Below are positions 6,001 through 28,600 of a DNA stretch of 64,000 bases, piece after piece. The translations under genes and the position numbers were made by a program. The number at the start of each line of letters is the position of its first letter. Within the stretch, counting starts at the first letter, position 1. The notes beneath the pieces were generated by a model, which saw only the letters and a list, made by a program, of their open reading frames with translations, was not told the origin of the DNA and did no database searches. The stretch is from Mytilus californianus (Eukaryota), in the NCBI RefSeq assembly GCF_021869535.1, contig NW_026262734.1, positions 15,438,001 through 15,502,000 on the forward strand. Direction: 5' to 3'.

Positions 6001-9000
6001 ACTGGCATAACAATGAGTACCGACTTGACTTTGTCCATATCAAACAATCCTGACAGGAATGATATTACCTGTATAGTCTTACCAAGTCTGAAAAATAAAC
6101 CAACAATCCTCACAGGAATAATATTACCTTATAGTCTTACCAAGTCTGAAAAATAAACCAACAATCCTGACAGGAATGATATTATTACCTGTATTGTCTT
6201 ACCAAGTCTGAAAAATAAACCAACAATCCTGACAGGAATGATATTACCTGTATAGTCTTACCAAGTCTGAAAAATAAACCAACAATCCTGACAGGAATGA
6301 TATTATTACCTGTATAGTCTTACCAAGTCTGAAAAATAAACCAACAAACCTGACAGGAATGATATTACCTGTATTGTCTTACCAAGTCTGAAAAATAAAC
6401 CAACAATCCTGACAGGAATGATATTACCTGTATAGTCTTACCAAGTCTGAAAAATAAATCAACAATCCTGACAGGAATGATATTACCTGTAAAGGCTTAC
6501 CAAGTCTGAAAAATTAAACCAACAATCCTGACAGGAATGATATTACCTTATAGTCTTACCAAGTCTGAAAAATAAACTCACAATCCTGACAGGAATGATA
6601 ATACCTGTAAAGGCTTACCAAGTCTAAAAAATAAACCAACAATCATTCTTTACACTGTGAAAGTATGTCTATCAGTGGAATATCAATTAGTGGATAGTGT
6701 GTCGTAACGGTTAACCCTATGTATATATTCGGTTGTTGGTTAGTTCCAAATGAAATAATTTTCATTGAACCAATGATTTTTATAACATTGGAATAGGCAA
6801 ATAAAATATCTTTCACAATATTAAATACTGCATGAAGACTCTGTGTTGCAAACATTGCTGAAAATACTCCTCACATTTGTACAATTTTCAAATCTATCTG
6901 GTAATCATGGTAATACTGTCATAAGGCATTTTTCTAAATCCAGACAAAAACTTATTTTTCTGCAAAACACATCAAATATTAAGCCTTAATATGTTAATTT
7001 GTAGTTTAACCACATCTCTTTTACTGTTATCTATTTGAAAAAAATCTGCATTGCTTCCCATTACATTAGTTTATCAAAACAGTGAAAAATTGTTGCTTTA
7101 CATAGTCATGATTATAAGTAGCTATTCAACAAATAATCTCAGCTAAAATCAAAGAATAGAGTCAACATTTAAATAAGTTCATTCTAAGCAATACATGAAA
7201 TTCTTAAAACATAACAAATAAAATTAATGAAGGTGAGCCCTATCTTTTATGAATAGTTGATGAGATTAATAAATTGGTTGATTTTAAATGTCCAGTGGTA
7301 AATATAACATGCATCTTTAGATCTACATGCTGAGTCAGTTTTTTTAAAGTGATAGATTACAAGGAAATGGTATACAGGAAGATATTTTTGAACAATTTAA
7401 CCAAGCTCTGAGCTGACCAACTTTGTTTTCCTCTAAATACTGTTAGCTTGATTGATGAGAAGTTAAATACCAATTTGAAGTCTTTGGTTTGACCCACTAA
7501 TTCCTACACTTGAGATTAACACACAACTACAGGGGCAGTAAAGATTGATGACCATATCACTGTCAATCTCCTGACCAAAGAAGAAATCATTCATTCCATT
7601 TTTTGGAAGAATGGATAAATGAACTGACAGACAAAGTGAATAACCCAGTGGTGCTATAAATAATAAAAAAAATATCTCCTCAGAAAAGGAACAAGATATT
7701 GTTTTACCAGTAACTCTAATTGCCTGCTCCAGAGTAATAATCTCATTCTATTAGAAACTATTTTCTATATGAATAATCTCAAAACAAATTTACCCCATAT
7801 CATCACCAAGAATTCCTCCCTTTCGCTTCTTGTGTAAACCCCACATCCATAAAACAGCCTCTTTCTGATGATCATATAACTTTTCAAACAACTCTTTGTA
7901 CATGAAATAACCATTCCCAACATGCACCATTCCATTATTCTCCTCGTCATTGCCTTCTTCTTCATTTCCATGTTCTTTCAGGTATTGCTGAAAGAAAAAA
8001 AAATGTGTTTCAACTTATCAAATTTTTGGTCAGTGTAAAAAAACTATTAACTGACTTATTGCAATATTTAACAATCATGTATTTACCAATATAATTACTT
8101 TTCTCTACTTTTTTCAATCACCAAACAGTTCCAATTTTACGAAAAAAAATATGATGTAAAAAGTGTTGTCTTCACAGCTTTTTCTTGCAGAAAAAGATCT
8201 TTGTTTATCATGTTTATTGCAAGGAAATTTAAAATCCCTTGTGTAATCATCATGATTTCTAAAATGGGTTAAGAAAATTTTAACAAGTTCAATGCTTATT
8301 ACTCATATGTGTATTTATATAGGCATTCAGAGCTCACAAAACCTACCACATTTAGTATATGCCTGTCCATAGTCAGGAACCTGTAATTTGGTAGGTGCTG
8401 TTGGTTACTGTGTATCACATTTGTTTTTTCGTTTGTTGTCTTGTAAATGGCAGGGCATTTAAAAGCTTACTATACAGTATGGGTTTTACTATTTGTTGAA
8501 GGTTGTACTGTGACCTATAGTTGCATTCATCTATGTCATTTGGTCTCTGGTGGATAGTTGTTTCATTGGCAATCATACTGCATTGTCTAATTTTTATATT
8601 GTAGTTCTGAGAAAAATTATATTAGAAGTTATAATTCGAACAAATCATGTTTTCAGTTGTTTATTTTCTTAAAATCCTGTCATAGCCTGTCTGAAAACTT
8701 CAGCATTATCAATCTTATAATATGGTGAATTTTTAGGCATGACATATTTACTTAACTCTTACGAAAATTTCTTAATTCAATCTTACTTCCATTTTAGCAA
8801 CTTTCTTTGCTAATTTTTCACTGTGGCAGATGGTTAATGCTTGTCTATTTAAATCCAGAGCAGCTTTGACTTTTCCGTCACCAATGAGCTGTTTGGCCTC
8901 CAGAACAAGCTTGTTAAATTTGTCCTGTTCATTCTGATTATTCTGTGATTTTCCTGGTGTCTTTGTGACACTTGGTTTGATGTCTCCATTTGAACTTTGT

Positions 9001-12000
9001 TCTACAATCAGACATTATTATCTTGAGAATGGATTAATAATTCCCACTATATCTTGTAAACCTTCTATCTTATGTAAATCAACAATATATCATAATTTTC
9101 CCCAAAATTCTAAATGCGACAAGAATGCACATGTTGTCATGATAAGCATACATGTACATCCACTCGTAATTCTAAGTATTGGAAACAGGAAGTAGGTGTC
9201 TGATAAAAGCACCTACACATTACAACTCATTACTATCAAGCTACTGACCCTAATATGAAGTCAGTCATTTTCTTTGGTAATTTTTAAAAAAATTGTGAGA
9301 AAAATATTTGTTTTCATTCAAGTCATGTTAAATCAAAATATCTACAAACAATAAGTAGGTGTCCCACAGATCCAAAATACTCTCACATATTACTACACGT
9401 CATTGGCAAGCTGATAAGTCATTCTGTTCAGTAATACTGGAGAAATGTGTAACCTAAATTTTTAAGTTCATTCAACATATTGAAATATATAAAGTATTGA
9501 CAAATAAAAAGTTTGTGTCTGACAGATCCCAAAAGTGTTCACACTTTATAACTCAACATTGTCAAGATGGTGACCAAATATGAAAGTATTTGTATAGCAT
9601 TTCCTATGAAAAGTGTGACAGAAATAGGTGTAGGATAAAAAGAGGGATGAACAAGGTGATTGCATTATAGCCCCACTTTTAGAGTAGGAATATAAAAAGT
9701 GGGGGCTATAATAAATCCTTTTATGACAATGTGCATGCATGTTCATAAAAGATATATAAAAATAAGAAGATGTGTGGTATGATTGCCAATGAGACAACTC
9801 TCCACAAGAGACCAAATGACACAAAAATTAACAACTATAGGTCACTGTACTGCCTTCGACAATGAGTAAAACCCATACCACATAGTCAGCTATAAAAGGC
9901 CCCGAAATGACAAATGTAAAACAATTCAAACGTGAAAACTAACGGCCTGATTTATGTACAAAATAATGAATGAAAAACAAACATGACACAAAAAACAAAC
10001 GACAACCACTGAATTACAGGCTCCTGACTTAGGACAGGCACATACAGAATGTGGCGGGGTTAAACTAGTTTGAAGGCGTGCTAACCCTCCCTCTAACCTG
10101 GGACAGTGGTGTAACAGTACAACATAAGAACAAACTATAAAAATCAGTTGAAAAGGGCTTAACTTATCAGATCGATACAAAGTAGAAATAGCAGTCAATA
10201 AGTTTGATCCATAACAGTATTTCAAACAAGATCATGTGATGTATATCAAAAAGATCATGTGATGTATCTCAAACAAGATCATGTGATGTATTTCAAACAA
10301 GATCATGGGATGTATCTCAAACAAGATCATGTGATGTATCTCTAACAAGATCATGTGATGTATCTCTAACAAGATCATGTGATCTTTTATTCATTTTATT
10401 TATCACTTAATGGCTTACCTGTGTTATTTACTTCTGCTTCATTTTCATAGTTTTCTTTGATATATGCCTGGAAATTAAAGTATGTTAATGATTTTAAAAT
10501 GTATATGTATACTGGTGTTTTTAGAAAGTATTATTAAATTTATTGTTTTACATCCAATAGCCCATTTACTCTACATATCAATATACATTATTGTTTAGGG
10601 GCCAGCTGAAGCCAGTCTATGGGTGCAGGATTTTCTCCATGCGTTGAAGACCTACTGGTGGCCTTGGGCTTTTTACTGTTCTTTGGTCGGGTTGTTGTCT
10701 CTTTGATACATTCAGCATTTCCATTCTTTATTCTATTTAAAACTGCTTTCCATTTACATTTATTGAGAAACACTTGTAATTTTTAGACCCTTCACCAAAA
10801 GAAAAATTTTATATATGTATTACATACATGTGACAATAAGAATTCACACTTCTACAATACATGTATATAAAATAAAAAAATAATCAAAATGTGTATTTTC
10901 CTTGTTCTAGATAGATCCTATGTACATGTAGTAATCTAAAAAACTAGGAAATAAAAAGTATATATAATTATTTATTAAATGATATGAATAAATCAGCCAT
11001 AATACGAATATGATAGGTGTTTTATTGTGATCATATGCAAATACTTGCTCAAATCCTTATCAGTGTATCAAACTGTAAATATTTCAAAACCAGATATCCA
11101 ATGATACTCACCTCTGGAGCCACAAATTATATCATTTCTTTATTTCATTTAGGCAGTATGCCTGTAAGTGTAACTTAACAGTATCCATTTTCCATAAAAA
11201 GTTTCAGATGTTTTATTGGTTTTCTTAGAGAATAAACATTTCATATTTTTATTATTTATCATTATACACAGCTAAATATTCTAAAGATACACAAAACGGT
11301 CACACTATATATCAAGATGAAGTCTCGAGTGAAAAAAAAAATTACAGAAAAAAGAATGTGAAAAAAGTAGACTATTAAAAATAAGAAATCAAAATATGAC
11401 AGAGACATCCATCTCTATAAAATGCATAACAAGCATGGACTATTGTCAAATTGTTCAAAATATGCGGAGAAATAAAACAAAACATCACTTTTTCGATTTT
11501 TACAGGTTTGTAGTTAAGCATGGGTTCAATTTAGGTATTCCTAATTAGACAATTTTGGATCTTATGAAGGTCAGTTCAAACCAATTTTTCTATGATGCAG
11601 TATGGATTCAAAACTAAATTTGTGAAACAAAATAGAAAATGAGGATACATCTACCAAAATACACAGGATGTAAACTTTTGTCTGTTTCTTAAATAAATGA
11701 AGGAGAAAAACTGTCAAAATGGGTGCAATTGGGTACCTCACATTAAAGTTTCATGGTGTTGGGCTTTTAGTATTTTATTTATCTGCAACACACAGATACA
11801 CAAATAGACTAATTTACAAAATAATACAGTGATATCACTTCCAACCACTTTTAAATCAGTACCTCAATCTTTGATATTTTCTTTGTCAACTTTTCACTGC
11901 TATAGATTTTTACTGCCTCTCGATATAATTCTAGAGCACCTTTTAAGTTGCCTTCGTCAGTGTATAGTTTTGCTGTTTGAACAAGTTGATTGAAATTCTC

Positions 12001-15000
12001 TTGATCCTCCTGGGAAACAGATTTTTTCTTTGGTGTCTCTGAAGGAACATTGGATTTTTCTTTATTTGATGGCTTGTGTTCTGAAACAAAATAAACAACT
12101 TGTAATTCAGTGTATTTAGTAATTTTAAAAAATAATAAATTTACATTAAAAAAATTTATTGCCCCGACATGCATGCCCCCTGTGCCCCCCGTAAATCTGA
12201 AAATGAATATAAATCTAAATTTGCTATTATTAACATGTCTAAGACTAAATGTGTTTTTATAAAGCAGAAAAATGTTTATTTTTGACTGCTGTGTCATTGT
12301 CCAGTTTTGGGGTATTGTTTTTGTTAATCAGGATATTGCAAAAAGCAGTCCTTTCATGAATAAATTGCACATATAAAACTTCTGGTGAAAAATGGAAAAA
12401 AAATATAGACTTACTGTCACACTAAAAATTTGGACCAACATCATAAAAACCTATATATTGATTTCATATTCCATGAAGTATATTATATTAAAGTGTAAAT
12501 GTGTACAATACCTTCAGTAACCTTTTGTTCACTTAAAAATGTCTCTCCTTCTGTTTCCTTTAAATAAATCTGTAATAGAGAACATATGTGTCAATGTACT
12601 TCAGACAGAAAATAAGAGAAACACTTTTGACAAACATAAATCTGAAAGTCATCTGGATATGAAAGTTAAAAACACAGATGAAGTTTAAGAGTATAATATA
12701 TTTAAGGTACATGTAAGTGATAAAGAATATATGCATATAAAGTATTTATCCATTCTTTCCATCTTTCCAGCTTTATCCAGGTGGTGTTTTTCAAGTTTCC
12801 ATTTTACAAAAAGAAATCTGAAGTAAATAAATATTCCCCATTTCCATTCTCAATTCTATGTCTCACCTTTATGTGATTTTGATAATATAATGCAATAATT
12901 GAAATTAAAGTACAAACACTTGAACATGTAAACTTTGCAAAACATTCCAAGTCAATGCACCATGACTGAATGGGCAAGGCAAAAAAAACTCTGTGAAAAT
13001 GAGAAATGCCAAATTGAATGTTTATATAACTACATACCAAATAACATTGACTTATCATAAGAGGTTCCATTTAAACAGACCTTAACACAAACTAACAATA
13101 AACTATGCAAAAATTTCAAAGTCAATGAACCATGATGAGGCAGCTGGACCAAAATATCTTAATGGAAATACAGTAAGATGTGCCAATGCAAATACAAAGG
13201 CATATCAAATATCATTGACCTTATCACAAACTAATACATTGTTGACTCCACAGCCTCCAACGACACCTCTGGAAACAGCATGCCTAAGTCTCGCTCTTTC
13301 AATTTTGTTGAGGTGGGATAAAAATCACTTACTGACATTTTCACTTACTGCTGGCCATGACAGATGGTTATTTTATAAAAGTGATGTCCATTCTGATGTC
13401 CCTATGCAAAATCCATAAAGGTGGTTTTAATTCTTTCAAAAAACTGTTCTCAAACTTCAAGTTCCCATGAAATTCCACATTTTTAAAATTATCTAAATGA
13501 GTTAAACAGAAGCCCATTGTCTCTATTTTCATCCTGATAACAAGTTAAAGAATGATAGTAAAGTAAAAGAATTTTAACAGTTTGTTAACTAAATTACTTC
13601 AATCTTGGCTATTTTCTTAGCCAGTTTGTCATGGTTTGGGTTTATTTTCAAAGCTTCTCTATACAGTTCTAAAGCATCTTTTATTTTGCCCTCATCTGTG
13701 TACAGCTTGGCAGTCTGAACAAGCTGGTCGAATATTTCTTTATTATCTTCTGAAATGTTTTCTTTAAATGGAGTTCCTCCTATTGACTCTGGTTTTGTTT
13801 CTAAAAATATAAAAAAATAATCTATTTGGTAAACCAATCTATGTACACATTTTTAATGCATATTAAATTCTAAAAAAGTATTGCTAAAAATAGTTATCAC
13901 AGCAGCCATAAAAACTGAACTTGATTTATAACAATATTTAATTACTCAATTAAATTTTGTTATGTCAGATTCTTAAACAGCCGTAAATTATATTTGTGCA
14001 TATTTGGTGATAAAAAAATTAAGATTGTGCGTAGTATTTTATCACATTTGTGCATATCCATTTTACAGGTAACACAGGTAAATACAGGTATATAGATTAT
14101 TCATAACAAATAAGTCAATTTTTAAAATTTTGAATATTGAATGAATTATGTTTAATATTTTTCATAATGAGGACATAAATCCCAGTCATTTAATATTACA
14201 AAGTAATAAGGAAACCTGTAAGATTTAAGGTTTCATATGACTAGTTTTTATATTTCCAGGATTTGGTGCTTTTTTGACTGAATGATTGTGGCCAATGTAA
14301 CAAAAAGATGTGTGAAAATGTAATTGTAATGCATGTCAATGTAATACACCACTTAAATCTATTATTCTTACCTTCTTTTGTTGCATCAACATCATCATCA
14401 GTTCTATGATTTGTTTGCTCCTCATTTTGTTTTAAATATACCTGGAATATTAAAAACAAAATCATTAAAAGTTAACCAATAAGAGTGCTTCACAAGAAAT
14501 CTTGACAAACATTTTAACACACATGCTGCTAGCTATTTGTGAACAGATGACTTAAATTATTATTTAGTAGTATGATCTTAAAAACAGTCGAAATTACCAT
14601 GGAATTATCTGCAACATCCCTAGATAAGCTGGCTTTACAAGCAAACTGTCACTTCCATAAGAGTTTCTAATTCTTTAAAATGTGAAAAAAAAATTTGGGA
14701 AAGTTCCCACATTTATTTTAGTATATTTTTGATAGCTTTTCATTTATAAACCGATTGTGTCAAATCAAAATGCTTGTCAATTGAAAGGGCTTCAACATAT
14801 TAATTTAATGAAATAAATTCTCTGGTCATCATCTGTTTGGCAATAAGTTTTCTTTAGATTTTAACACAGTTAATTTTATTTTCTTAATTTTTTAAAGTCA
14901 GCCATAAAGTTTTTATTTTTTATTTTATAATGAAAAACATTGTTTCCTGATTTTTTTATTTACGTTTATAGATTATTATTTTTAATATAGTTCTCATCAA

Positions 15001-18000
15001 TCATGTTTATTCATTTCAGAACCTTTAGAAAATTCCAATCTCCAATAAATTATTTTCATTGAATAATCAATAGATTGAGTTTAAAACAAAATCCTAAATT
15101 CACATAAAAAAAATCCTAAATTCACATAAAAAAAAATATTATCAAATTAAACTTAAAATATAAATAACCTCTATCTTGGCTATTCTCTTAGCAAGTTTGT
15201 CATGATCGGGATTAATCTTTAAAGCTTCTCTATAAAGTTCTAATGCCGCTTTTATTTTGCCTTCTTCAGTGTATTGCTTGGCTGTTTGAATAAGCTGGCT
15301 GAATATTTCATTATTTCCATCTGAAATGCTCTCTTTCTGAGCAGTTTCTGCCTTTGGTGTACCTGTGTTTAAAACTAGTAATCAATATGTACTAAAATCA
15401 ATTACACAATACATGGTTATTACAAAAATTTTACTTAAACTTTTCAAAACTCAAAATTAATAAACTTTTAAGTTAATCATTGATCACTTATACATGTATA
15501 TTCAATCCATACCTTACTTTCAAATTCCAACTGTTGTTCCATAAAGATAAACTTGAAAAGTCGTACGAATCCTATTTTCAGATGAGCTGACTTTGATTGG
15601 ACATTAATAGAAATCTTTCACAGCGAAACTTCCTGAACATGCATTATGTTTAATACTTCTGAAGATCAAACATGAAACTAATGAATATTTATCTATATTT
15701 CCATTCTACATATAAGATTTATAACAACAACTCTTTATAACCTGAACAGTATATCCAGACTGACCTTGACTCTTAATATTCCCTGTACCTTGATTACCAC
15801 TGGTCTTTAAAAACATCTAAAAACAAACAAAAATCTCAAGATAAAATGATTCATTAAAAAATATCGTTCTCACTTGTATTGTATGGAAGAAACTTTATCA
15901 TTAATAGTCTATAAACTTCACTGAAAGTCAGTATGTAAAGACTTTATGATCAAACAATAGGCTACTGTAAATTCAGATATTATTGCGTGCATTTATTTTT
16001 GTGATTTTTGAAGACTGTATAAAAATGCGAGATCAATTATTGCGATTTCAGGAAATTCGGCATACAGATAAATGTATCAGATGTCAGAATGCGAGTTCTT
16101 ATTATTGCGAAATCCACCCAGTCGCATTAATAAAAACCTCGCAAATAATTTCTAAATTTACAGTATTCAAAATCTATTTTCAGGGACATGTAATGTCATA
16201 AAGCAAACGATTTAGTACAAATGTATCAGACAATATTGAGAAAAAAAAGATTAATGATATTTATAGATTATTACATGGCATTTTCCATATTGGCCCTGGT
16301 ATCAGCCCTAGACTCCCATATCAAGCCAGAGGGCTTTAGCCCGAGGGCTTGATATGGGTCGTGGGCTGATACCACGGACCATATGAAAAATGACATGTAA
16401 TAATCTATTTATCACATATTTTCAAGCAAGAGAAAAAAGATAGCATATACCAAATTATGTTTGATATTTTCAACAAAAATTCAAAAAAACATTTAACGAA
16501 AAAAATTTAAAAAATGTATCACAGTGAGTTAACAAAGTTCGAATCCCAGTGAGTAAACAAAGTTTTGTGAAAAGTTTAACAAATAATTAACAATAAATAT
16601 ATTAATTCCCAGAATTGTAATTATTAAACGACTTTAAAAAGTGTTACATTTCCAATTAATGCTGACGAAGAATACACCATATCGCTACTATGATTTGGAA
16701 ATATGTTCCGCTTGAACTTTCGATGTCATACAACAATCGCTTTTTCATTGTGACGTCATATATTTTCTAAATTCTTTATGACGTCCAAATTTTACGGGAA
16801 CTTTTGTGATTTCCACTGTTGATTTTTTACATTTTTTCTACTACAGCAGATTCGTAAATTTCTAAATTTCTTTTCATTGTGTTCTCATTTTTCATTTCTT
16901 GTATGAATTTACATACATCGTCATTTGATCTCTCTTGATCGTCTAACTGCTTTGGATGACAACTTGTTTACAAATAGTTTTTGATTGACAGGTTACCGGA
17001 AGTTAAACTCGGGGGCTCGATATGGATTTCAAGGGCTGATATCGATATTGGCCCCGAGGGCTGATAACCAACCTTGACTTCCGGCTATTATTGGCCATGC
17101 AAAAACGTACATATCAGTACAAAATATGTGATAATCAGTAGTATTGCATGTATCCCTTAAAATCATGATCCTATCATAAAGTAAAACAACTTTGTCTTGT
17201 CTTGTCAAAATTTTGTCATACAATATAGTGAGTAACTGCATGTGATCTTGAGTGCTGTCATTTGGGACAATATTATTTCAATTTGTGGTACATTTGAATA
17301 ACCTTATACTACAGTTTCAACATAAGACATCATTTAACATGTTAAACAGATATTATTCTTGGTTGAAAATAACTAAATTTACCTGACCAAAAGAAACGTA
17401 TTTCTATACTTCAAACAACTACAATGGGTCATTCCCAGAAAATAATTTTCAGGATCCTTTATTAAGCCCAAAATGTGTGTTACCATTTCTGTGTAACTCA
17501 TTAGTTACTTAATGCAATTTGAATGACTCACAAGGACTTCTGTTCTAATTTCATTTTTTTGGGGGCTAAAAGTGATACATCTAATAACATCTGATAGGAC
17601 TTTATAAAAATACCTCCATTTTAGTAATTTTCCTGGCAAGTTTTTCACTGTGATATATCTTTAAAGCTTCCTTGTTTAAGTCCAAAGCCTCTTTAATGTT
17701 GCCCTGCTCCACCAGATTTCTAGCACCAGATATCATCTGATTGTAGATCTCCTGGTCCTCTTCAGAAAGGTTCTCATCTAGCGGGTCCGTAGAACTTGAC
17801 CCAGATCTGTCTCCTTCAAATACAATTAACAAGTCAATCAATGTCAGAGCAAAACTAATTGTAACTGTGTACTATGTTTATTGCATGAAGATGTTGTATA
17901 CATTTGCATTCTATTTAAGCTTTATTTAAATACACCATTGTTTAATAAAAATTATTAAGTGTTGTGATTTTTTTTGGTTTTAATCTTGCTTAATTCATAG

Positions 18001-20851
18001 TAGCAGCCATGCTATAGTATTTTTGCCTCAACTTTGTAAATGCAAACTTATAGCTGACTATGAGGTATGGGTTTTGCTCATTGTTGAAGGCCATACAGTG
18101 ACCTGTAGTTGTTAACTTCTATATCATTTGGTCTCTGGTGGAGAGTTGTCTCATTGGCAATCATACCACATCTTCTTATTTTTATATTATTAGATTCATC
18201 AAAACATCATGGTCTAAATTAATGGACAAATAAATGGACAACAGCAATGCATTCATAACTTTATTATTTGGTTATATTCATAAATAATCTGACAAAATAA
18301 TAATATTGTTTCCTCTTTAATTACTCATGATTGTTGTTTTAAATTCATAATGAACTGGAAGAATTTCAGATACAGATATTGCTTATAATAAATGTGGGCA
18401 AGTGGTAGATTTTTCTGAAACCAATAATTTATTTTAAAGGTCAAGGTGCACATAGGTAGAAGGTTTTTCTTATATTATAGTTACCAGTATCTCCATCTTC
18501 ACCTGTTTCTTTAAGGTATGCCTGAAAAAAAAAACGTATTATTCAATTATCTTTTGCTCTTCATTATACATTTGTAAGAAGATTTCTGCAGCCGGTTGTA
18601 CGAACGTGGCATTAGCCTAATGAGTCATTAAGTCTTCATTAAGCCTTTATGATGCATTAGGCTAATGAAGACTTAATGACTCATTAGAATGATGACACCT
18701 TTGTACAACCGGCTGCTGACATACAGAAAATTGATCTGGTAGCAAAGTTTGAGGGCAAAGGTTACTTTCATAGAGGGAGATAACTACCAGAATCTAAGGT
18801 CAGGCAAATGTGATGTCTGATTGGTTAACATTCAGTTACACATAAAAAATTCTCTGACAATAAAGTTGTAATCATAATAAATATGCAATATCATATTTTT
18901 GTACCTCCAAAAATCATGGTTTTCTGGTAATTTTTATGCATTTGAAGTATACAAGTTAGCTTTAATGGAACAAAAGGTTCTGACATTCCTCCAAAACTAA
19001 GGATCAGGATATCTGCCAAGTAAGTGATTTTTTTTTTATTAATTTTCCATCTATTCCACTTCATTAAATACGATAAAAGACAGGTTTAACCATGCATGGA
19101 AAATATTCCCTTTTTCCATTTGAACTAGAATGAATATGATGAAAGAACCCACCAAACTGGTAAGATTAAATCATTCTGCATATTTATTTTGGCTTCATGA
19201 TACATTTAGTAATACCTTGGCTTGTGCAAATCAAAATTTTCTATAAATCTGAAAACTATTTTGCCTTGTCTCTAGATTATACATATCAAACAACACTAAT
19301 AGTATGGTGTTTTTTAATTTTATTGAAGGATATATCTTAAAGCTTAGACATAGCTAAACATACAACTATCATTGGCTCCTAATAACCTATCAGGGTTATA
19401 TGTAACACAAGTGTTAATGTTATTTACTTTAGGAAGGCTCAAAATGTATCAATTTGCACTTTCAGATATAATTGATTCTATTCCCAGAACCAGAAATAAC
19501 ATCAAAGAAAAATAACATATCAAAGTTTTTAGCTGATAAATAATTTACTATTTTCAAGGAATGTAAATCAGAATTACTTCCAGCTTCGTATAACTTCTCA
19601 GAAACACAAATCTGTTCAACACATACCTCCATCTTTCCTATCTTTTTGGCTAGTTTTTCATGGTAATGCATCTTTAGTGCCTGTCTGTACAAATCTAATG
19701 CATCCTTTATTTTCCCTTCTGTTGTTAATTGTTTAGCATTTGTGATCAACTCAGTAAATATTTCCTGTTCTTCTTCAGTCATTTCTGGAAAATGAAAAAA
19801 CCTGGATTTCATTTGTTCCCATGATTTTGACAAGTATAGAGTTTAGTGCTTTTTTGGGACTTATTTTTGTAAATGTATGTTCTTTTATGAACCTCTTGTT
19901 ATTCAAGTGAATTTACTAAAGGGGAGAGTTGAGTCGATAAAAAGCAAGGTTAACCAGGACACATATTAATGTGCCTTTCCTTAGTCAGGAACCTTGTCAG
20001 CGGATTCTTTTTGGTTTTTCTGTCCTTCAAGAAATTTTGTGTTTATAGTAAACCTTTGGTAGTCTTTCTTAAATGTATTCACAACCTGTCAAGACTGAAG
20101 TGATTTAGAGCTTGACAAACAGGTGCCACATGTGGAGCAGGATCTGCTTACCCTTCCGGAGCACCTGAGATTATCCCCAGTTTTTGGTGGTGTTTGTGTT
20201 GCTCAGTCTTTAGTTTTCCATGTTGTGTTTTGTGTACTATTGTTTGTTTGTCTTTTTCTTTTTTAGCCATGGCGTTGTCAGTTTATTTTCCACTTATGAG
20301 TTTGAATGTCTCTTTTGTATCCTTCACCACTCTTGGTATAGACAATTGTGTATTGCTGATGAACCTAGTTGACCTCTAGATATCTTTTTGTTTTTTTGTG
20401 TTTCTGGGTTGTTGTCTTATTGTGATAAACCCTGCATCTGTTCTTCACACACTGATTATAAAAATATATAATCTGTTGGGGGAATATTTGAGAAATAGTA
20501 CATAAAACATATAAAATGGTAAATGTGGTTTTGTTCATGCTTATTATCTGAACACAGACATGTTAGTGTTATAGGGTTAAATTATAGTATGTATTGCTGA
20601 AATGAGCAGTTTGGAAGTATTGAAAGCCAATTCTGAAAATACTTGATTTTTAGAAAAACATTTAACTACTTACCTTTCAAAAACATAGAGGGTAGGGTTA
20701 CATTTATGTGGAAAACAAAGATGAAACAATTTTAAATCCTGACCTGGCTAATCATGTACAGACAGAGAATACATGTTAAACTACCTTTAGTTTCATGTGA
20801 TATTGATACTCTTGATAAGCCATCCCCAGTTTCTTGTACATCCTTGTCCAT
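1..20851 (-). CDS. ERCC6L: DNA excision repair protein ERCC-6-like (PICH), SNF2-family helicase; 5' part only, continues beyond the left edge
   Basis: Coding exons on minus: 20851-20785, 19784-19627, 18521-18485, 17813-17614, 15816-15765 (or 15789), 15362-15169, 14441-14372, 13800-13598, 12569-12512, 12080-11863, 10467-10419, 9001-8787, 7987-7794, 6087-5962, 4662-4497, 3440-3315, 2996-2904, 20-1. All are GT-AG and phase-consistent. The translation contains LYDHQKEAV (Q motif), GGILGDDMGLGKT (Walker A), YVALDEGHKIK (Walker B), LTGTPIQNNLKELW and FDFVHQGSLLGTARTFKMEYENPITRARERDAT. The last matches my recollection of human ERCC6L (FDFACQGSLLGTLKTFKMEYENPITRAREKDAT). Confidence 0.95.
54..2033. 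mobile_element. Non-autonomous hAT-type DNA transposon, about 1.98 kb
   Basis: TIRs CAGGGCTTCCAAAA (54-67) and TTTTGGAAGCCTTG (2020-2033) match at 13/14. Perfect 8 bp TSD GTACAAAT at 46-53 and 2034-2041. No transposase ORF. Confidence 0.85.
337..1275 (-). mobile_element. HINE/Helentron-like element nested in the hAT element
   Basis: On minus, the 5' end is TTTTATACGCCCGTTTACGGGACGTAT followed by a (GTCC)n microsatellite. About 180 bp internal tandem repeats follow. The 3' subterminal IR GGGCGTAT and a terminal hairpin lie at about 340-370. Confidence 0.7.
3780..4115 (+). repeat. Abundant dispersed short repeat (CCTGTCCCAAGTCAGGA ... TTGTCTCTTTGACACATTCCCC family)
   Basis: The same motifs recur at about 10590-10735 and 30540-30612 in this window. 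Confidence 0.6.
6045..6645 (-). repeat. 58-62 bp minisatellite, 10 copies; each copy is a 3' splice site plus the first about 40 nt of the ERCC6L Walker A exon
   Basis: Minus-strand unit ttgttggtttatttttcag|ACTTGGTAAGACTATACAGGTAATATCATTCCTGTCAGGA. Acceptors give exon starts at 6623, 6564, 6505, 6446, 6387, 6328, 6266, 6207, 6145 and 6087. Confidence 0.95.
9760..10200 (-). repeat. Abundant dispersed repeat ending ...GAGAGTTGTCTCATTGGCAATCATACCACATC
   Basis: Related copies or fragments at about 2700-2755, 5690-5810, 8350-8600, 18050-18185, 21340-21700, 28325-28510, 48980-49170 and 59460-59700. Confidence 0.65.
10217..10383. repeat. 24 bp minisatellite, 7 copies
   Basis: Unit gtat(t/c)tcaaacaagatcatgtgat, in an ERCC6L intron about 35 nt from the 10419 donor. 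Confidence 0.9.
15965..16163. mobile_element. Tc1/mariner-type MITE, about 200 bp
   Basis: TA|CTGTAAATT ... AATTTACAG|TA terminal inverted repeats with TA TSD. Confidence 0.75.
16263..17110. mobile_element. Palindrome-headed non-autonomous element (possibly Crypton-like)
   Basis: Near-perfect arms of about 65 bp (16263-16327 and 16346-16408) around GAGGGCTTTAGCCCGAG. A related GGGCTGATA/GATATGG motif recurs at about 17010-17070. Confidence 0.5.
18589..18715. repeat. Foldback palindrome, about 127 bp (MITE-like)
   Basis: CAGCCGGTTGTAC...CTAATGAGTCATTAAGTCTTCATT pairs with AATGAAGACTTAATGACTCATTAG...GTACAACCGGCTG. Confidence 0.75.
20120..20335 (+). repeat. Dispersed SINE-like repeat (GGTGCCACATG(T/G)GGAGCA..TTACCCTT..GAGCA(C/T)CTGA family)
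   Basis: Second copy at about 26640-26865 with the same order of motifs. Confidence 0.55.
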
Positions 20852-22189
20852 TATTCTAAAATATCAAAGATTCACGTTTAATGTTGAGACATTTGTTTAG
20901 TACACATGTGGTATGATGAATAAAGGTTATGTAATATGGTTATTATAGTCTTAAATAAATCATTTATTTTAGTTTTCAACTTTTCAGGAAAATACAGGCA
21001 AATGACAGTATTGAACACTAGAAATTTTAATATAGGTTGATCATGTAAAAGCAAACTTTAACTCTGGCAAGGCTTTAACTGTGAAGTGGATAACATGAAC
21101 ACATTTAATACACTCTTTTATAATATAATTTCACATTAATTTGTAGTGCAATTTTTTTTCTTTTTTCTGGCATATCTAGATAATAAACCTTATCACCATT
21201 TGTCCACCATTAATGGACATAGTCTTAGATACATAATTTTTTTTGTTATTGTTATTGCTTTGACTAGCTGTCAGAAACTGTGAGTACTCTAAGATCTGTA
21301 CTTAATGTCTTTTTTGTTGTTAGGGATGAGGGATGGATAAATACCCTGCCATGTCCAGTCTGTATTTTTGTTTGACGTTTTTCTGCATTCTTAATGTGCC
21401 TGTCCCAAGTCAGGAGCCTATAGTTCAGTGGTTGTTGTTTGTTCAGGTCTGTCATGTTTGTTTTTCATAAATTGTTTTGTTATAAAGTAGGCCTTTAGTT
21501 TTCTCAATTGAATTGTTTCATACTTTTCAAGTCAGAGCCTTTTATAGCCGACAAAACGGTATGGGTTTTTCTCATTGTTGAAGGCCGTACAGTTGTCTAT
21601 AATAGTTTACTTCCAATTCATTTGAACTTTGGATGATAGTTGTCTCATGAGTCATGGGCATTGCAATTATACTAGTTTATTACTACATCTCCTTATTTTT
21701 ATATAACAGCCATTCCCATAGGCAGATAGGGAGTGTTTTTTTTCATGAATGAGTTACACAGCTTTACCCGAAGGTCAATTGGCGTAAACAACATCATTGA
21801 ACATAGGTTCTTACTTTGACATAATATCACAAGCATTTTGACGCAGAAAATTTACAGGAAAGTGCACAAATTCGAAAAAGTCGTCTATCTGACATGTCTA
21901 TTGCCCGTATTGGGGCATAACTATTTTGGTGAATCATTCTCTCATATGCACAAATAGTGAATAAATGAACTAATGTTCTGGGTCATTTTAATAAGGAAAT
22001 AAGTCAAAAAGATGTAATTCCCCATTTAGTAAAATGTCTCTCAACTCATTTTATCTGTTTTATTATTATTAATATTAACTTTTTTAGACAAATGGGTGAA
22101 TGACAACAGTCATAAAGGTGCTTACTCTATAGATGTTGCGTTAAGTTTAAGGATTAATATGTCTGGTTAATTAAAACAAGTTTTAGCAA

Positions 22190-22290
22190 AAGTCTTTGCG
22201 CCCAGACTGAACTTTACATTTCTGATATTATTTTTCGTTTTTGAAAGTTCCGCCAACAGGAAGTGACGTTTTCAAATCCTTGTTTTGGTC
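22190..22290. promoter_or_regulatory. Putative bidirectional promoter shared by ERCC6L and BRAP
   Basis: Lies between the divergent ATGs (20851 minus, 22631 plus). Contains TTTGAAA (22240-22246), TTCCGCCA (E2F/CDE-like), CAGGAAGTGACGT (ETS plus half CRE) and TTCAAA at 22271-22276 (CHR on the minus strand). Both ATG-containing exons are preceded by acceptors (20857-20856; 22612-22613), so 5'UTR exons should start here. Confidence 0.55.
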
Positions 22291-22630
22291 AAAATCAAGT
22301 TGATTTATCGTATACACAAATGTTACGTCTTGGTTATTGGTATCATAGAGATACAAACATTTATAGGTGTATGAATTAAAATTTCTAGTCCCATATATGA
22401 TCAAGTATGACCAAAAAACTTTACAACCATATGTATTAAATATCCGGAAATATATTTTCCGTCATTGATTTTCTTTAGGGAGCTCTTTTTTTTGAAGATA
22501 GAAATGTAATATTCTTGGAAAAAACTGGAAAAAATAAGAAGGAAAAAAATTGGATTCGTTCTGGCAAGGATTTTGTTAGTCCTACTATAAAAATCCATGT
22601 TTCTAACATTTAGACTCTGATGAATTTCAC

Positions 22631-25600
22631 ATGTCTGAATCAATCTCTTTGTGTATTCTGAGGCTAGAAATAGAGAATGATCACGAAATCCCAAAATCTT
22701 TCAATTACTGTGGTATGTTATGGCTTATGCTGTTATGTTCATAGAATAACTCAATATTTAAAGAAGTCCACAAATCAGTTCCAAATTTGATATGAAATTG
22801 ACTGTAGGTTTCCATGTCTTTCTGTCCAATGGCAATGTATTTATGTCGTCAATATTGAATCTTTTCCAGCAAATTATAGGCCCCTTCACAGTTAGTGCAG
22901 CCATGTTGAATAGGGGGCAGATTTTCATAATGGAAGTAAAAATGGTTTGAAAAATACGGGAAAACATCATTAAAAGACGACAGTTGCTTAAAACATGCAA
23001 AGGATTTCCCGTACTACATGTACTATCATACTATTTTCACCTCTATCCAAAAAATCTGCCCCCTATTCAATATGGCCAAACTAACCGTGAAGTAGCCTAT
23101 TCATCTGCTCTCTTTCCTTTTGAAAGAAATACACCTGTGTAAAACTTCTCTGGCATATATTCTTACGGGTTTCATTTCCGATGACATAAACACACTAGTG
23201 AAAAGAAGCAATATGTGAGTGCTCTTTATGTAAGTAGTTGGAAGTTCTTCAGACCAGAATGAAATTACACCTCCACCCCCATGTGAGTTTGCCCCTTATC
23301 ACATTTAATAATAATGTAGGAGAGTTCTAGCTAGAATATAAGGGCTCACAGACAGGCATTTTGGGCTGTGAACATGTTAATGAAAGATTTTTGACAATTA
23401 AATATGTACATGCATATGTAGTAGGAGAACTTTACCTATTTGTCGATTGTTATCAAAAATTCATTTTCTGATGAGAAACTAACTTATGTTTATTGGTTGT
23501 AAGACATGTATATCTATATTTATGTAATTGTGGGAAAATATATGATTTCCAGAAAGTCTTCCAAATTTTCATTCAAGTGAACATAGATTCCTGGAAGACA
23601 GATAGTTTCAATTATGTTTAACTTCCAGCAACACTCAAAGACTTCCAGAGGAAATAGTATTAACTCAAACATATCACAGTATTCCTCCATATGGTGAAAA
23701 ATGTACCTTTACCTGAATGATCTTTGATGTGAGTCGCTAAAGAAGATCCTTGATTTGTTATTGCTATTTTTTTTAAGGGGGTTGGGTCGTACCCCATAAA
23801 AATTTCCTTTTGAAGAATTGTATTCATGTAACAACTTTATTTCTAGTTTCGTTAAACAAATTACCTGATAGAAGGGTGGTTATTTTAGTTAGTTCATGCT
23901 GAAATATCAGTGAATGTAACATGAACTTTAGGCATGCATACATGGCTAACCCTCCTTAATTGGTTTAGTTTTATCATACATTTCTTAAACATTTTCCCAG
24001 AATTCAAAATTACTCCAGATTCAATTAATTCCTTGTTTCAATAAGATCTGCCTAATGAGTTAATTCTTTACCATTAATATAAATTTTGGTTTTTAGTGAA
24101 CATTTTTTATTTGTTTCTTAGTTGTCAATGTTTTATATATCACCTAATTCCCTTGTCATGCTTGTTGGAGATAGATATTTATAAATTGTTTTTATGCCCC
24201 ACCTACGATAGTAGAGGGGCATTATGTTTTTCGGTCTGTGCGTCTGTCTGTCCTGCTTCAGGTTAAAGTTTTTGGTCAAGGTAGTTTTATATTGTTTTTA
24301 TAGTATTTGTATTTAAGCACAGGATTTCCATATAGTAGATACAGAATCTGATATTTATATTTCAGCATCAGACCTCCATACTGCTAACATACAATCTAGG
24401 GATAGAATTCAATCTGATATTTGTATTTCAGCATCAGACCTCCATACTGCTAACATACAATCTAGGGATAGAACTTAATCTGATATTTGTATTTCAGCAT
24501 CAGACCTCCATACTGCTAACATAGAATCTAGGGTTAGAATTCAATCTGATATTTGTATTTCAGCATCAGACCTCCATACTGCTAACATAGAATCTAGGGA
24601 TAGAATTCATTCTGATATTTGTATTTCAGCATCAGACCTCCATACTACTAACATACAATCTAGGGATAGAATTCAATCTGATATTTGTATTTCAGCATCA
24701 GACCTCCATACTGCTACATGTAATATAGAATCTAGGGATAGAATTCAATCTGATATTTGTATTTCAGCATCAGACCTCCATACTGCTAACATAGAATCTA
24801 GAGATAGAATTCATTCTGATATTTGTATTTCAGCATCAGACCTCCATACTGCTAACATACAATCTAGGGATAGAATTCAATCTGATATTTGTATTTCAGC
24901 ATCAGACCTCCATCCTGCTAACATACAATCTAGGGATAGAATTCATTCTGATATTTTTATTTCAGCATCAGACCTCCATACTGCTCACATAGAATCTAGG
25001 GATAGAATTCATTCTGATATTTTTATTTCAGCATCAGACCTCCATACTGCTAACATAGAATCTAGGGTTAGAATTCAATCTGATATTTGTATTTCAGCAT
25101 CAGACCTCCATACTGCTAACATAGAATCTAGGGATAGAGCATCGTATGCTTCAGTTGTTAATACATCCGGACCAAATTCTAGTGTAGAAAAGTCTCCTGT
25201 AGAGTTGAACCTCACTTGCAGAGGACAGCGTGGGTTTGGTGACTTCACAATAGAATCTTATTTCTCGGGTAAGTATAAAATGAATTTTACTTGCATAGTT
25301 GTAGGGAAAATTGACTGTTCTGAGAAGTCACATTAAATTCTATTTTATCGGATACTTGTAAATTACAAATTTTTAAATGTATTTTATTGTGCAGGGAACA
25401 GTGTTAGTTACCATAAATGATGTGATTAGAAATAGATTTCACATGAAATTTCATGATATATTATTTATTTAGTAGTATTTTGTTTCTCAAATAAGACCAA
25501 AATTAATGTAATACATTTTTACACAACCACAAATTTGTAAGGACATATAATGGAAATGGTTTATTGTTTGTTGTCATCTTCATTGTAAAGTTATCTGCTA

Positions 25601-28600
25601 TGTCTACCATTTATGACAATTGATATTGATGTTTAGAATTGTGGCTCTACCTGTTTCTTGGAAAAAGGGCAAAAGAGGTTTAAAGAGTTTTTACTAGTTT
25701 ATATTTACCATTAATAATGTTTAATCCGCTTTAAAAAAATCCCTTTTTTTGTAAATTAACAGATTCAGTTCCCCAGTAATAAGCTAAGGAGCCCTATATT
25801 AGTCACGTCCCAAAATTTTCTGATTATTTTCAGTGTAGATTATGATTCACCATTTTCTTTGAATTCCTTATAAAAACTTGTCTTTAAGTTTTAATCAGGT
25901 TAGTGGTAGCTCTTTGTTTCCGAGCTATAAATGGTAAGAGTGGTTGAAAATGGGATTATTACAAACAGGTACATGTACAATGTACATATATTTTTAAATC
26001 TTATTTGGATGAAATTTATTCATATAGTTCCTAATAAGCTCATTATTGTACTTGGACAATTTTAAGGGAATACTTATAACCTTTATATGTATTTTTTGTT
26101 TTCAACAAATGTTGTTAGGTTGCTGTTATCTAACAAGTACTATCATAATTTGTCTGTCAATGTTTATCTAAAATACACATGTGGTTTACCCATGCCATTC
26201 CAGATTCTTGTATCATATACTGTGGATTCATTAATATTCGTTGGATACCAATTTTCGTTGGAACAGGGGAACCAGGAATTTAAATGCTCAACGAATGACA
26301 TATTTTCTAAAGGAATGTATGCAGACTTTGACAAAGCCACAGAATTTTAATATCCAGGTAAATGCAAGTTTTCCTCAATCCACGAAAATTGGTACCCACG
26401 AAAATAAATGAATCCACAGTACCTGACTAACTAATGTTTTACAGACCTATAGATTTACTGCAATATGTGAAGAAGATCTTAACAGACAACATCATGTGTT
26501 AGTTGACCGTAGGAATATCTCTTTAACAGATGATGATGGATATGCTCCAATTGTCATAACCAAAGTCCTGTCCTCTTTTGCTTGAATGTGACCTACTGAA
26601 TTAGACTTATTACTGGGTTTGTACTAACATGAGCAACACAACAGGTGCCACATGGGGAGCAAGATTTGCCTACCCTTAAAGAGCATCTGAATTCACCACC
26701 AGTTTTTGGTAAGGTTCATGTTGCTCAGTCTTTAGTTTTCTAGGTTGTGTTCTGTGGACTGTTGTTTGTCTTTTCGTCATTTTTCATTTATTTACCAGGG
26801 CATTGTCAGTTTGTTTTCGACCTTTGAGTTTGGCTATCCCTTTGGTATCTTTCACCTTTCTTTTTAAACCAGCAATTATCACTTACCAATCATTTCTACA
26901 TTGTAGTAAATTTTGAAACCAAATCTGAAATGAAAGCAGCTGAAGACAAGACCGACAGGCATACTGAAGACTTTAAACCAATTAAAGATGGCCAGTCTCC
27001 TGGTCCATCATCAGATGACCACAGACCTGGCAGCAGTCAGAGTACAAGGCCTAAGAGTCATACACCACCACTGAAATCCCCACATATGATACACTTTTAT
27101 TCTGGAAATCCAATGGTGGAAAAGACCAGGGGAATACTTCATCTTTATAAAGACGAGTAAATGTTTTATTTTAATTTTCACTAGCATAAGGTTTACATCA
27201 TTTTAATGTATAACAGGTACCTTTACAGTTTGCCTATAGTTTGTCTGCTGAGGTAGATTCGAGGTGGGGTGCACTTGACATGTGCTCCCTAAAACGCGAA
27301 AAAATTATAGTATAGAATTAGAAGCTGTACAGAGGCGGTTAGAAGATCCACTAGTGCAAGTTTCTTGTTTAAATAAGGTTCAGATTATTTATTATAGTCA
27401 TTCACCATAACAATCACCTTTGTAGTTTCATGGTATCATGCTCTCCTTGGGTGCAGGAGGTCATTGGTTCGAACCATTGAGTCAGGTCAAACCAAAAACT
27501 TTGAAAGTGGCATTTGCTGCTTCTCTGCTAAGGGCCCTGCATTTAGGAGTAAGAGCAAAGATGGGCAGCTTGAAGTCAGAATAATGTGTTTGGCTAGGTT
27601 GTCATGTCTTCCTGTGGACTTTTGTTACCGTTTGAACTATCATGTTAAAAGTCCAGTTCAAAGTTTTAGTCTGTAGTATATTTTATAGAAAAGAAGCAAT
27701 GCCCATATTACAAAACAACATCAATAGATATTTTCAACAGTTCTCAAGGGGATAGGTAACCTGTTTCTTATTAATTCATTTTGGTCAAATTTACATCAAA
27801 GTTCATTTATTCGGAAGCAGGACAAATCGCCCCACTGGCAAATCGCCCCACACCAAATCGCCCCACTTTTTCACCAACTCGCCCCACTTTTAAAAAATCG
27901 CCCCAAACTGGTTTACCAACTCGCCCCACTTTTAAAAAAATCGCCCCACTTCTGAAAAGGGTTAAATCCCGTTAATTTTTCTCCTGCCAACTCGCCCCAC
28001 TTAATGAAATAATGTAAACCTAGATGAATATATAATTTCAGGTCTGCCAACTCGCCCAACTTAACCAAAAAAATCTTTTACACAGAATACAAAAAAAACG
28101 AAAATTTACTAAATCATTATTATTGACATTGAGTTGGCATGACTCAACTTGATTCATCAGGTATTTTCTATTTTTCATAAGTGGGTCGAGTTGGCATTAC
28201 TCAATTCATCAGGATTTTTCTATTTTTCACTGGTTGGGCTAGTTGGCATTCACGTCACAGAAAATACTGATACTCACTTCTTTATGCTTTATTTCAACAA
28301 AAAGAAAAGAACTAAAAAATAGATAAAAGAAGATGTGGTATGAGTGCCAATGAGACAACTCTCCATCCAAGTCACAATTTGTTAAAGAAAAACCATTATG
28401 TATAGGTCAAAGTACTGTCTTCAACACGGAGCCTAGCTTGGCTCTCATCGAACAGTAAGCTCTAAAGGGCCCCAAAAATGACTAGTGTAGAACCATTCAA
28501 ACGGGAAAAACATGTGTATCTAAGGTTTTAATAGGTATTGATTTTATTTATAAGTGGGGCAGGAACATATATATACAACGGGATTGCATCTTTCATAAGT

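Follow-up and report, generated by a model that had tools for sequence, protein, structure and literature searches.

Exon architecture of the mussel PICH gene

A 64-kb stretch of Mytilus californianus DNA (the window, to which all positions refer) carries on its minus strand the 5′ third of the gene for PICH/ERCC6L, a mitotic DNA translocase of the SNF2 family. The part of this ERCC6L orthologue at 20851-7794 begins with coding exon 1 and ends with the first SNF2 exon; between them, six homologous tetratricopeptide repeat (TPR) exons alternate with five short linker exons. An initial annotation of the DNA had claimed that the N-terminal TPR of PICH (N-TPR) was amplified six-fold here as two-exon, frame-preserving cassettes, and the copy number, intron phases and cassette lengths given below confirm that claim.

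In coding order, exon 1 (20785..20851, 67 nt) opens with the ATG at 20851, encodes MDKDVQETGDGLSRVSISHETK in 22 codons plus one base, ends in a phase-1 donor and shares 94% identity with the orthologous exon that begins the M. galloprovincialis gene. TPR exon T1 (19627..19784, 158 nt), entered in phase 1 and left in phase 0, is followed by linker exon L1 (18485..18521, 37 nt; AYLKETGEDGDT+G), entered in phase 0 and left in phase 1. The alternation continues with T2 (17614..17813, 200 nt), L2 (15765..15816, 52 nt; MFLKTSGNQGTGNIKSQ+G), T3 (15169..15362, 194 nt), L3 (14372..14441, 70 nt; VYLKQNEEQTNHRTDDDVDATKE+), T4 (13598..13800, 203 nt), L4 (12512..12569, 58 nt; IYLKETEGETFLSEQKVTE+), T5 (11863..12080, 218 nt), L5 (10419..10467, 49 nt; AYIKENYENEAEVNNT+) and T6 (8787..9001, 215 nt). 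The first helicase exon (7794..7987; QYLKEHGNEEEGNDEENNGMVHVGNGYF...GGILGDDMG), whose first codons appear to be the template of the linker exons, comes next, and further SNF2 exons of the same gene lie at about 6128-5961, 4661-4497, 3449-3315 and 3002-2898 and from 20 to beyond the window start, all on the minus strand.

All six TPR exons end in ...K(M/I)E directly before GT, in phase 0, and each next exon opens in phase 0, after a polypyrimidine-AG, with x(Y/F)(L/I)K (starts at 18521, 15816, 14441, 12569 and 10467 for the linkers and at 7987 for the helicase exon), exactly as first annotated. The linker exons have good phase-1 donors, and T2-T6 have phase-1 acceptors. The linker-plus-TPR pairs measure 237, 246, 273, 276 and 264 nt, all multiples of three, and T1 plus L1 measures 195 nt; because each length is divisible by three, and with matching flanking intron phases (0 and 1 throughout), every cassette is frame-symmetric. 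These phases and lengths also fit the annotated view that any TPR donor is in frame with any later linker or helicase acceptor. Orthologues with a single TPR, ranging from scallop to sea star, keep the KME-AYL motif at the exon junction as well, which identifies the motif as homology rather than chance and explains why the start of the next exon was kept by every duplicate.

The assignment of the gene to PICH/ERCC6L, likewise proposed at the outset, is supported by several domain matches. In Pfam searches the whole protein (P0173) scores 224 bits for SNF2-rel_dom (2.6e-66), 89 bits for Helicase_C (2.7e-25), 69.0 bits for TPR_1 (cut-off 27.8) and 68.7 bits for TPR_2 (cut-off 27), and the module profile additionally matches residues 1832-1896, a C-terminal TPR. 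The SNF2 ATPase core (Walker A DDMGLGKT, DEGH box and helicase C lobe) is encoded by exons in the window together with DNA beyond the window start. The gene extends more than 30 kb past that start, where an exon about 30 kb away encodes FTKQELKELF...LDAHIAYLYSLG, a candidate for the PICH family domain (PFD) that follows the helicase, put forward for its resemblance to the matching stretch of fetched orthologues. Used as a query, Pecten ERCC6L retrieves the M. californianus protein with 1319 bits and 68% identity across 53% of the query, and the best 120 matches listed for it are nearly all named ERCC-6-like or ERCC6L, metazoan-wide; orthology is assigned by search ranking and the names of the matches. 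Both annotated ends of the array, the ATG at 20851 and the helicase exon end at 7794, are exact, and the long N-terminus, put at about 500 residues, amounts to some 545 residues before Walker A.

The same chain is already encoded by the RefSeq model XP_052074016.1 ('DNA excision repair protein ERCC-6-like [Mytilus californianus]', 1901 aa), whose residues match the window exons at 90-100% and whose N-terminus runs T1-L1-T2-L2-T3-L3-T4-L4-T5-L5-T6-helicase. This model begins at Met 19782 inside T1, and the upstream exon with its ATG at 20851 adds 23 residues. The upstream exon is conserved, the annotations of M. edulis and M. galloprovincialis treat it as coding, and the M. californianus RefSeq model that omits it is probably 5′-short.

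Head to head with PICH exon 1, at 22631-36465 on the plus strand, lies a BRAP orthologue with a RING, a UBP zinc finger and no fewer than 11 exons. The gap of about 1.8 kb between the two genes (20785-22631) and their orientation suggest a common bidirectional promoter region. Dispersed repeats occupy the array introns at about 8300-8700, 9700-10300, 10500-10900 and 12700-13300, with copies also at 18048-18188 and 21386-21500, and a short tandem repeat (period about 71 nt, 93% identity) lies in the T5-T6 interval at 10217-10383. Palindromic, self-reverse-complementary stretches of 39-148 nt that resemble miniature inverted-repeat transposable elements are present in other introns (14424-14462, 16263-16408 and 18582-18722). 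In M. galloprovincialis these 13 exons take up 8.7 kb (locus L015, 501-9224, which contains 2352 N) against 13.1 kb in M. californianus, and the difference is all intronic.

Homology, constraint and predicted structure of the modules

Tblastn searches of the window with module peptides returned exactly six copies, all on the minus strand. A six-module profile run against the 1499 open reading frame (ORF) pieces of the window matched six at E-values from 5e-30 to 2e-36, the next match having an E-value of 1, and a search of the entire 1.65 Gb genome gives no match beyond these six modules. A decayed seventh module considered at 16967-16830 was rejected (E 1.9). In the module alignment T2-T6 are 50-60% identical to T1, and T3 and T4, the youngest duplicates, are 79% identical to each other. 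Scanned singly with TPR_1, five of the six modules match (best E 8e-7), T1 alone falling below the cut-off.

DNA similarity between the units is limited to the exons, and intron alignment is no longer possible. Synonymous sites are saturated between modules (proportion of synonymous differences, pS, 0.5-0.99), non-synonymous divergence is 0.10-0.33, and the ratio of non-synonymous to synonymous rates (dN/dS) is 0.07-0.16 for the six pairs in which dS is estimable. Selection between species was measured in mussels only. At the genomic locus of M. galloprovincialis all 13 exons are collinear with those of M. californianus, and in that comparison each TPR exon has a ratio of non-synonymous to synonymous differences (pN/pS) of 0.14-0.27. 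The pooled dN/dS of the TPR exons is 0.16 at a dS of 0.33, against 0.31 for the linkers, and the first helicase exon shows zero non-synonymous changes. The modules are more conserved than the linkers both across Mytilus and in a more distant mytilid. In the M. edulis locus L014 the N-terminal exons were not found. As judged from these sequence comparisons, all six modules are old and under purifying selection.

An AlphaFold2 model of residues 1-560 of the spliced N-terminus, a check proposed in the initial annotation and computed here with four mytilid orthologues, contains six separate three-helix units at a predicted local distance difference test score (pLDDT) of 80-92. The linkers contribute stretches of 20-30 residues below pLDDT 40, and the predicted template modelling score (pTM) is 0.23; together these values indicate that no fixed arrangement between the units is predicted. 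The third helix of each module (helix C) crosses the exon junction into the xYLKE residues. The predicted N-terminus is thus a string of six separate TPR-like bundles, arranged as beads on disordered acidic or Ser/Thr-rich linkers.

The modules correspond to the N-TPR of human PICH, whose structure in complex with the BEN domain BD1 of BEND3 is deposited as PDB 5JNO. The module profile matches 5jno_B end to end (E 7e-4), placing profile positions 16-68 onto chain residues 2-54. An AlphaFold2 model of T6 alone (pLDDT 89) superposes on 5jno_B with a root-mean-square deviation of 0.9 Å and a target-normalised TM-score of 0.75; Foldseek gives the pair a probability of 1.00 with an E-value of 0.3, which is not significant for so small a domain. 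A phmmer search of the PDB with T6 alone did not reach 5JNO, which was reached only by the six-module profile. The column of a conserved human Tyr, which we take to be Tyr21 in human numbering, holds F or Y in all six mussel modules. Human PICH has one N-terminal and one C-terminal TPR, and its single N-TPR binds BEND3, as the initial annotation had stated (PMC5737856, PMC8565832). BEND3 stimulates PICH's ATPase and translocase activities, and deletion of the TPR domains in the human protein abolishes co-precipitation with RIF1 (PMC5737856, PMC8565832). Localisation to ultrafine anaphase bridges, PLK1 binding and BEND3 binding are known for the human protein only (PMC8565832, PMC5737856).

Distribution across animals and origin of the array

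Modules were counted by profile in about 120 ERCC6L proteins. Six modules are present in M. californianus, M. edulis, M. coruscus and M. galloprovincialis, in the oysters Crassostrea virginica, Saccostrea cucullata and S. echinata, and in the bryozoan Watersipora subatra. A related mytilid represented by the contig L010 has five, the spider Uloborus diversus and the fluke (trematode) Echinostoma caproni have three, and intron-poor animals in metagenome assemblies have two, seven and eight. About 100 other animals have a single module, including four scallops, Solemya, unionids, Mya, Mercenaria, gastropods, a chiton, Lingula, Owenia and a nemertean as well as echinoderms, amphioxus, vertebrates, corals and horseshoe crabs; a few truncated ERCC6L models show none. 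Given so many single-module animals, a multi-TPR N-terminus recurs but is not the common invertebrate state; its being common was an outcome that the initial annotation had named as contrary to its own reading. That annotation's description of the array as lineage-specific survives only in part: oysters, a bryozoan, a spider and a fluke also have several modules.

Some counts carry qualifications of their own. The Pinctada imbricata model (P0189) starts in the middle of its TPR module, with upstream exons probably missing, and its count of one is unsafe for that reason. The metagenome and Logan contigs behind the intron-poor animals (P0002/P0158, P0001 and P0029) hold PICH genes with seven and two N-TPR modules in single ORFs, together with one 717-aa ORF with eight modules and no helicase. 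The helicases of these animals are only about 45-54% identical to those of molluscs.

The oyster ERCC6L-like proteins (C. virginica XP_022343267.1 and isoforms, S. cucullata XP_062566324.1 and S. echinata XP_061162866.1) resemble the mussel protein in having six N-TPR modules. In the one oyster locus read, that of Saccostrea cucullata, the two-exon cassette has the mussel phases, and the last module resembles the single-copy TPR. Oyster linkers are longer than those of mussels and rich in Ser and Pro, and oyster modules do not correspond one-to-one with mussel modules, except possibly T2 and T6. The bryozoan locus has the phase-0 intron after the TPR in common with the mussel, and its cassettes are partly different. 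The Pecten locus has exon 1 with a phase-1 end, a lone TPR exon entered in phase 1 and left in phase 0, and the helicase exon.

These layouts suggest a route by which the array probably arose. The ancestral molluscan gene would have been arranged as in Pecten, with exon 1 leading to a single TPR exon and then to the helicase exon. Exons shuffle under a rule of phase compatibility, by which a domain-sized unit with compatible flanking phases multiplies in tandem and stays in frame. Because the TPR exon (phase 1 to 0) is not frame-symmetric alone, it could have multiplied in frame only together with a companion exon running from phase 0 to phase 1. The linker exon would be this companion, copied in truncated form from the first 12-23 codons of the helicase exon, and its xYLKE residues complete the third helix. 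Repeated tandem duplication of the two-exon unit would then have produced five modules in the ancestor of Mytilus and the related mytilid, and a sixth would have been added in Mytilus, where T3 and T4 are the closest pair. The step that created the first linker-exon donor lies outside this reconstruction.

Whether mussels and oysters owe their arrays to the same events was addressed with a module tree and approximately unbiased (AU) tests, both based on 53 alignment columns. In the tree the T6 modules of mussels and of oysters fall beside the single-copy molluscan TPRs, a clade confined to mussels unites Mytilus T3, T4 and T5 (99/96), and none of the mussel modules forms a pair with one from oysters. 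The AU test rejects neither monophyly of all mussel modules (p 0.23), nor that of all oyster modules (p 0.46), nor a clade of the two T2 modules (p 0.50). The T2 modules of mussel and oyster are each other's best match, with an identity of 60% that exceeds the identity of either to its own paralogues. The two arrays may be independent or partly shared, and we lean toward independent expansion because scallops have one module.

An at least partly shared origin, from one duplication in an early pteriomorphian bivalve followed by loss in scallops, strikes us as a tentative alternative that is rather doubtful. It would account for the identical exon design of Saccostrea, in which a TPR exon left in phase 0 is followed by a short xY(L/I)x linker exon entered in phase 0 and left in phase 1, for the reciprocal match of the T2 modules and for the unrejected T2+T2 clade. 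The identical design is weak evidence of common origin, however, because it is forced by the ancestral exon phases, and the LSEEDQ motif of T2 is ancestral, being found in single-copy species as well. The mussel-only clade and the absence of any other mussel module that pairs with an oyster one speak for separate expansion, as do the four scallop species with one module and a complete N-terminus, and separate monophyly is not rejected either.

Transcripts, isoforms and function

Evidence that the array is transcribed comes from the related mytilid. A 3.6-kb Logan contig from run SRR23320463, L010, contains spliced BRAP head to head with a single ORF that comprises exon 1, five modules with their linkers and the start of the helicase. 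This contig is transcript-level proof of the multi-module architecture in a mytilid relative. Its modules correspond to Mytilus T1, T2, T3/4, T5 and T6, and the one module that matches T3/4 suggests that the T3/T4 pair arose by a younger duplication. In the same assembled RNA contig the spliced BRAP and PICH mRNAs are merged, only 384 nt apart.

Taken as a whole, the data are probably best explained by a PICH orthologue in which duplication of a two-exon cassette placed six TPR bundles before the motor. Several observations weigh against this account. When reads from four runs were mapped to 7900-13899 at 90% likeness, exon depth was about 0-2 with no splice joints among those listed, and the raw RNA run had zero depth on T4-T6. 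The RefSeq model of M. galloprovincialis, XP_076106514.1, starts at an internal Met in T5, and the new C. virginica isoform X1 starts at an internal Met in T4; shorter 5′ forms may exist, or both models may be truncated. A latent phase-1 donor within the helicase exon, considered as the origin of the linker exons, is unsupported by the present sequence, GGA ATG GTG. BEN domains are present in the M. californianus genome, at 17 or more loci, but no BEND3 orthologue was identified among them, and the residues that contact BEND3 are reported to be poorly conserved except for one aromatic (PMC5737856). The function proposed below, finally, is reached by inference only.

In the read mapping the intronic repeats drew a summed contig depth of up to 10^6 plus hundreds of raw RNA reads, and exon bins were nearly empty; for this reason the word shares of 0.06-0.16 in 'RNA?' runs probably reflect repeats, not exons. 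A single 179-nt contig on T4 extends 12 nt into the intron and is therefore unspliced. Logan proteins P0289-P0292, examined as evidence for the array, were rejected, since they derive from the large C-terminal exon.

The internal starts of the two relatives' RefSeq models and the lack of RNA support in the M. californianus mapping are what one would expect if the upstream modules were a separate gene, untranslated or decaying exons, with only T6 in functional PICH. We nevertheless regard this as extremely improbable. Open frames, canonical splice sites and compatible phases are preserved in all six exons, which also show purifying selection between species. The modules are joined to the helicase in several separate annotations from four Mytilus species and in the spliced contig of the related mytilid, and no stop codon or start context points to a separate gene. 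The assignment of the modules to a separate upstream gene, which the initial annotation had set against its own reading, is close to refuted on these grounds.

Given the phases, isoforms with 1 to 6 TPRs in M. californianus would be mechanically possible. The array might even serve mainly as a substrate for regulated cassette skipping, so that valency would be adjusted to tissue or stage through PICH isoforms carrying one to six TPRs. In its favour, phase-0 TPR donors fit any later linker or helicase acceptor, phase-1 linker donors fit any later TPR acceptor, and every cassette is a multiple of 3 nt; moreover, exactly T4+L4 is missing from M. galloprovincialis VDH97717 (a phase 1-1 skip) and exactly one linker+TPR unit from C. 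virginica isoform X4 (a phase 0-0 skip). Both of these are annotation models, however, and no skipping joints were recovered in the M. californianus mapping described above. RefSeq lists a single form for M. californianus, and L010 holds all of its modules. Uniform purifying selection on the six modules fits constitutive inclusion at least equally well, and a mainly regulatory role for skipping therefore seems to us possible but rather unlikely.

We infer that the cassette-built array acts as a multivalent docking platform, with a higher avidity for the N-TPR ligand or room for several partners at once. Six independent docking units on flexible tethers before the motor would raise avidity or admit several partners, with a ligand modelled on the human case, in which BD1 of BEND3 stimulates the ATPase and translocase. 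The suggestion that such an array suits a repeat-rich genome found no support. More speculatively, and with little expectation on our part that it will hold, the N-TPR could be a recurrent target of copy-number selection, multiplied probably independently in mussels, oysters, the bryozoan, the spider, the fluke and the metagenome animals, with valency setting the tethering of PICH to a chromatin-bound partner and splicing tuning that valency; a BEN-domain protein located at satellite or rDNA repeats would be one example of such a partner.

What the PICH N-TPR does is understood only in part. Six-fold arrays under purifying selection in mussels, and present in oysters and a bryozoan, argue that module dosage per molecule matters, and the comparative series of one, two, three, five, six, seven and eight modules could be used to test N-TPR avidity and help to find its ligand outside vertebrates. 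We found no description of a multi-TPR PICH in the literature. The protein sequences are already public as automatic models, and the array is a moderately novel evolutionary variant of a known protein, formed by a known evolutionary process; it opens no long-standing question. It does provide a clean textbook case of a phase-asymmetric exon amplified by co-opting a mini-exon of its neighbour, which completes the last helix of the domain.

Three known systems place the mussel array in context. The first is human PICH. As in chain B of 5JNO, the mussel module is a TPR-like unit of three helices placed immediately before the SNF2 motor, and the mussel protein likewise has a C-terminal TPR, but the human protein has one N-TPR where the mussel has six on flexible linkers. 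The coding sequence of human PICH is essentially one exon, and hence there is no cassette logic there. In classical TPR arrays such as those of OGT, Hop/Sti1 and kinesin light chain, contiguous repeats stack into one superhelix. The mussel modules have the helix-turn-helix motif in common with these proteins, with Pfam TPR_1 and TPR_2 above cut-off for the whole protein, but they are lone capped TPRs with 20-30 predicted disordered residues between them. The array also departs from ordinary tandem exon duplication, in that the domain exon of PICH is asymmetric and the repeat unit took up a second mini-exon, derived from the exon that follows and contributing the final part of the module's last helix.

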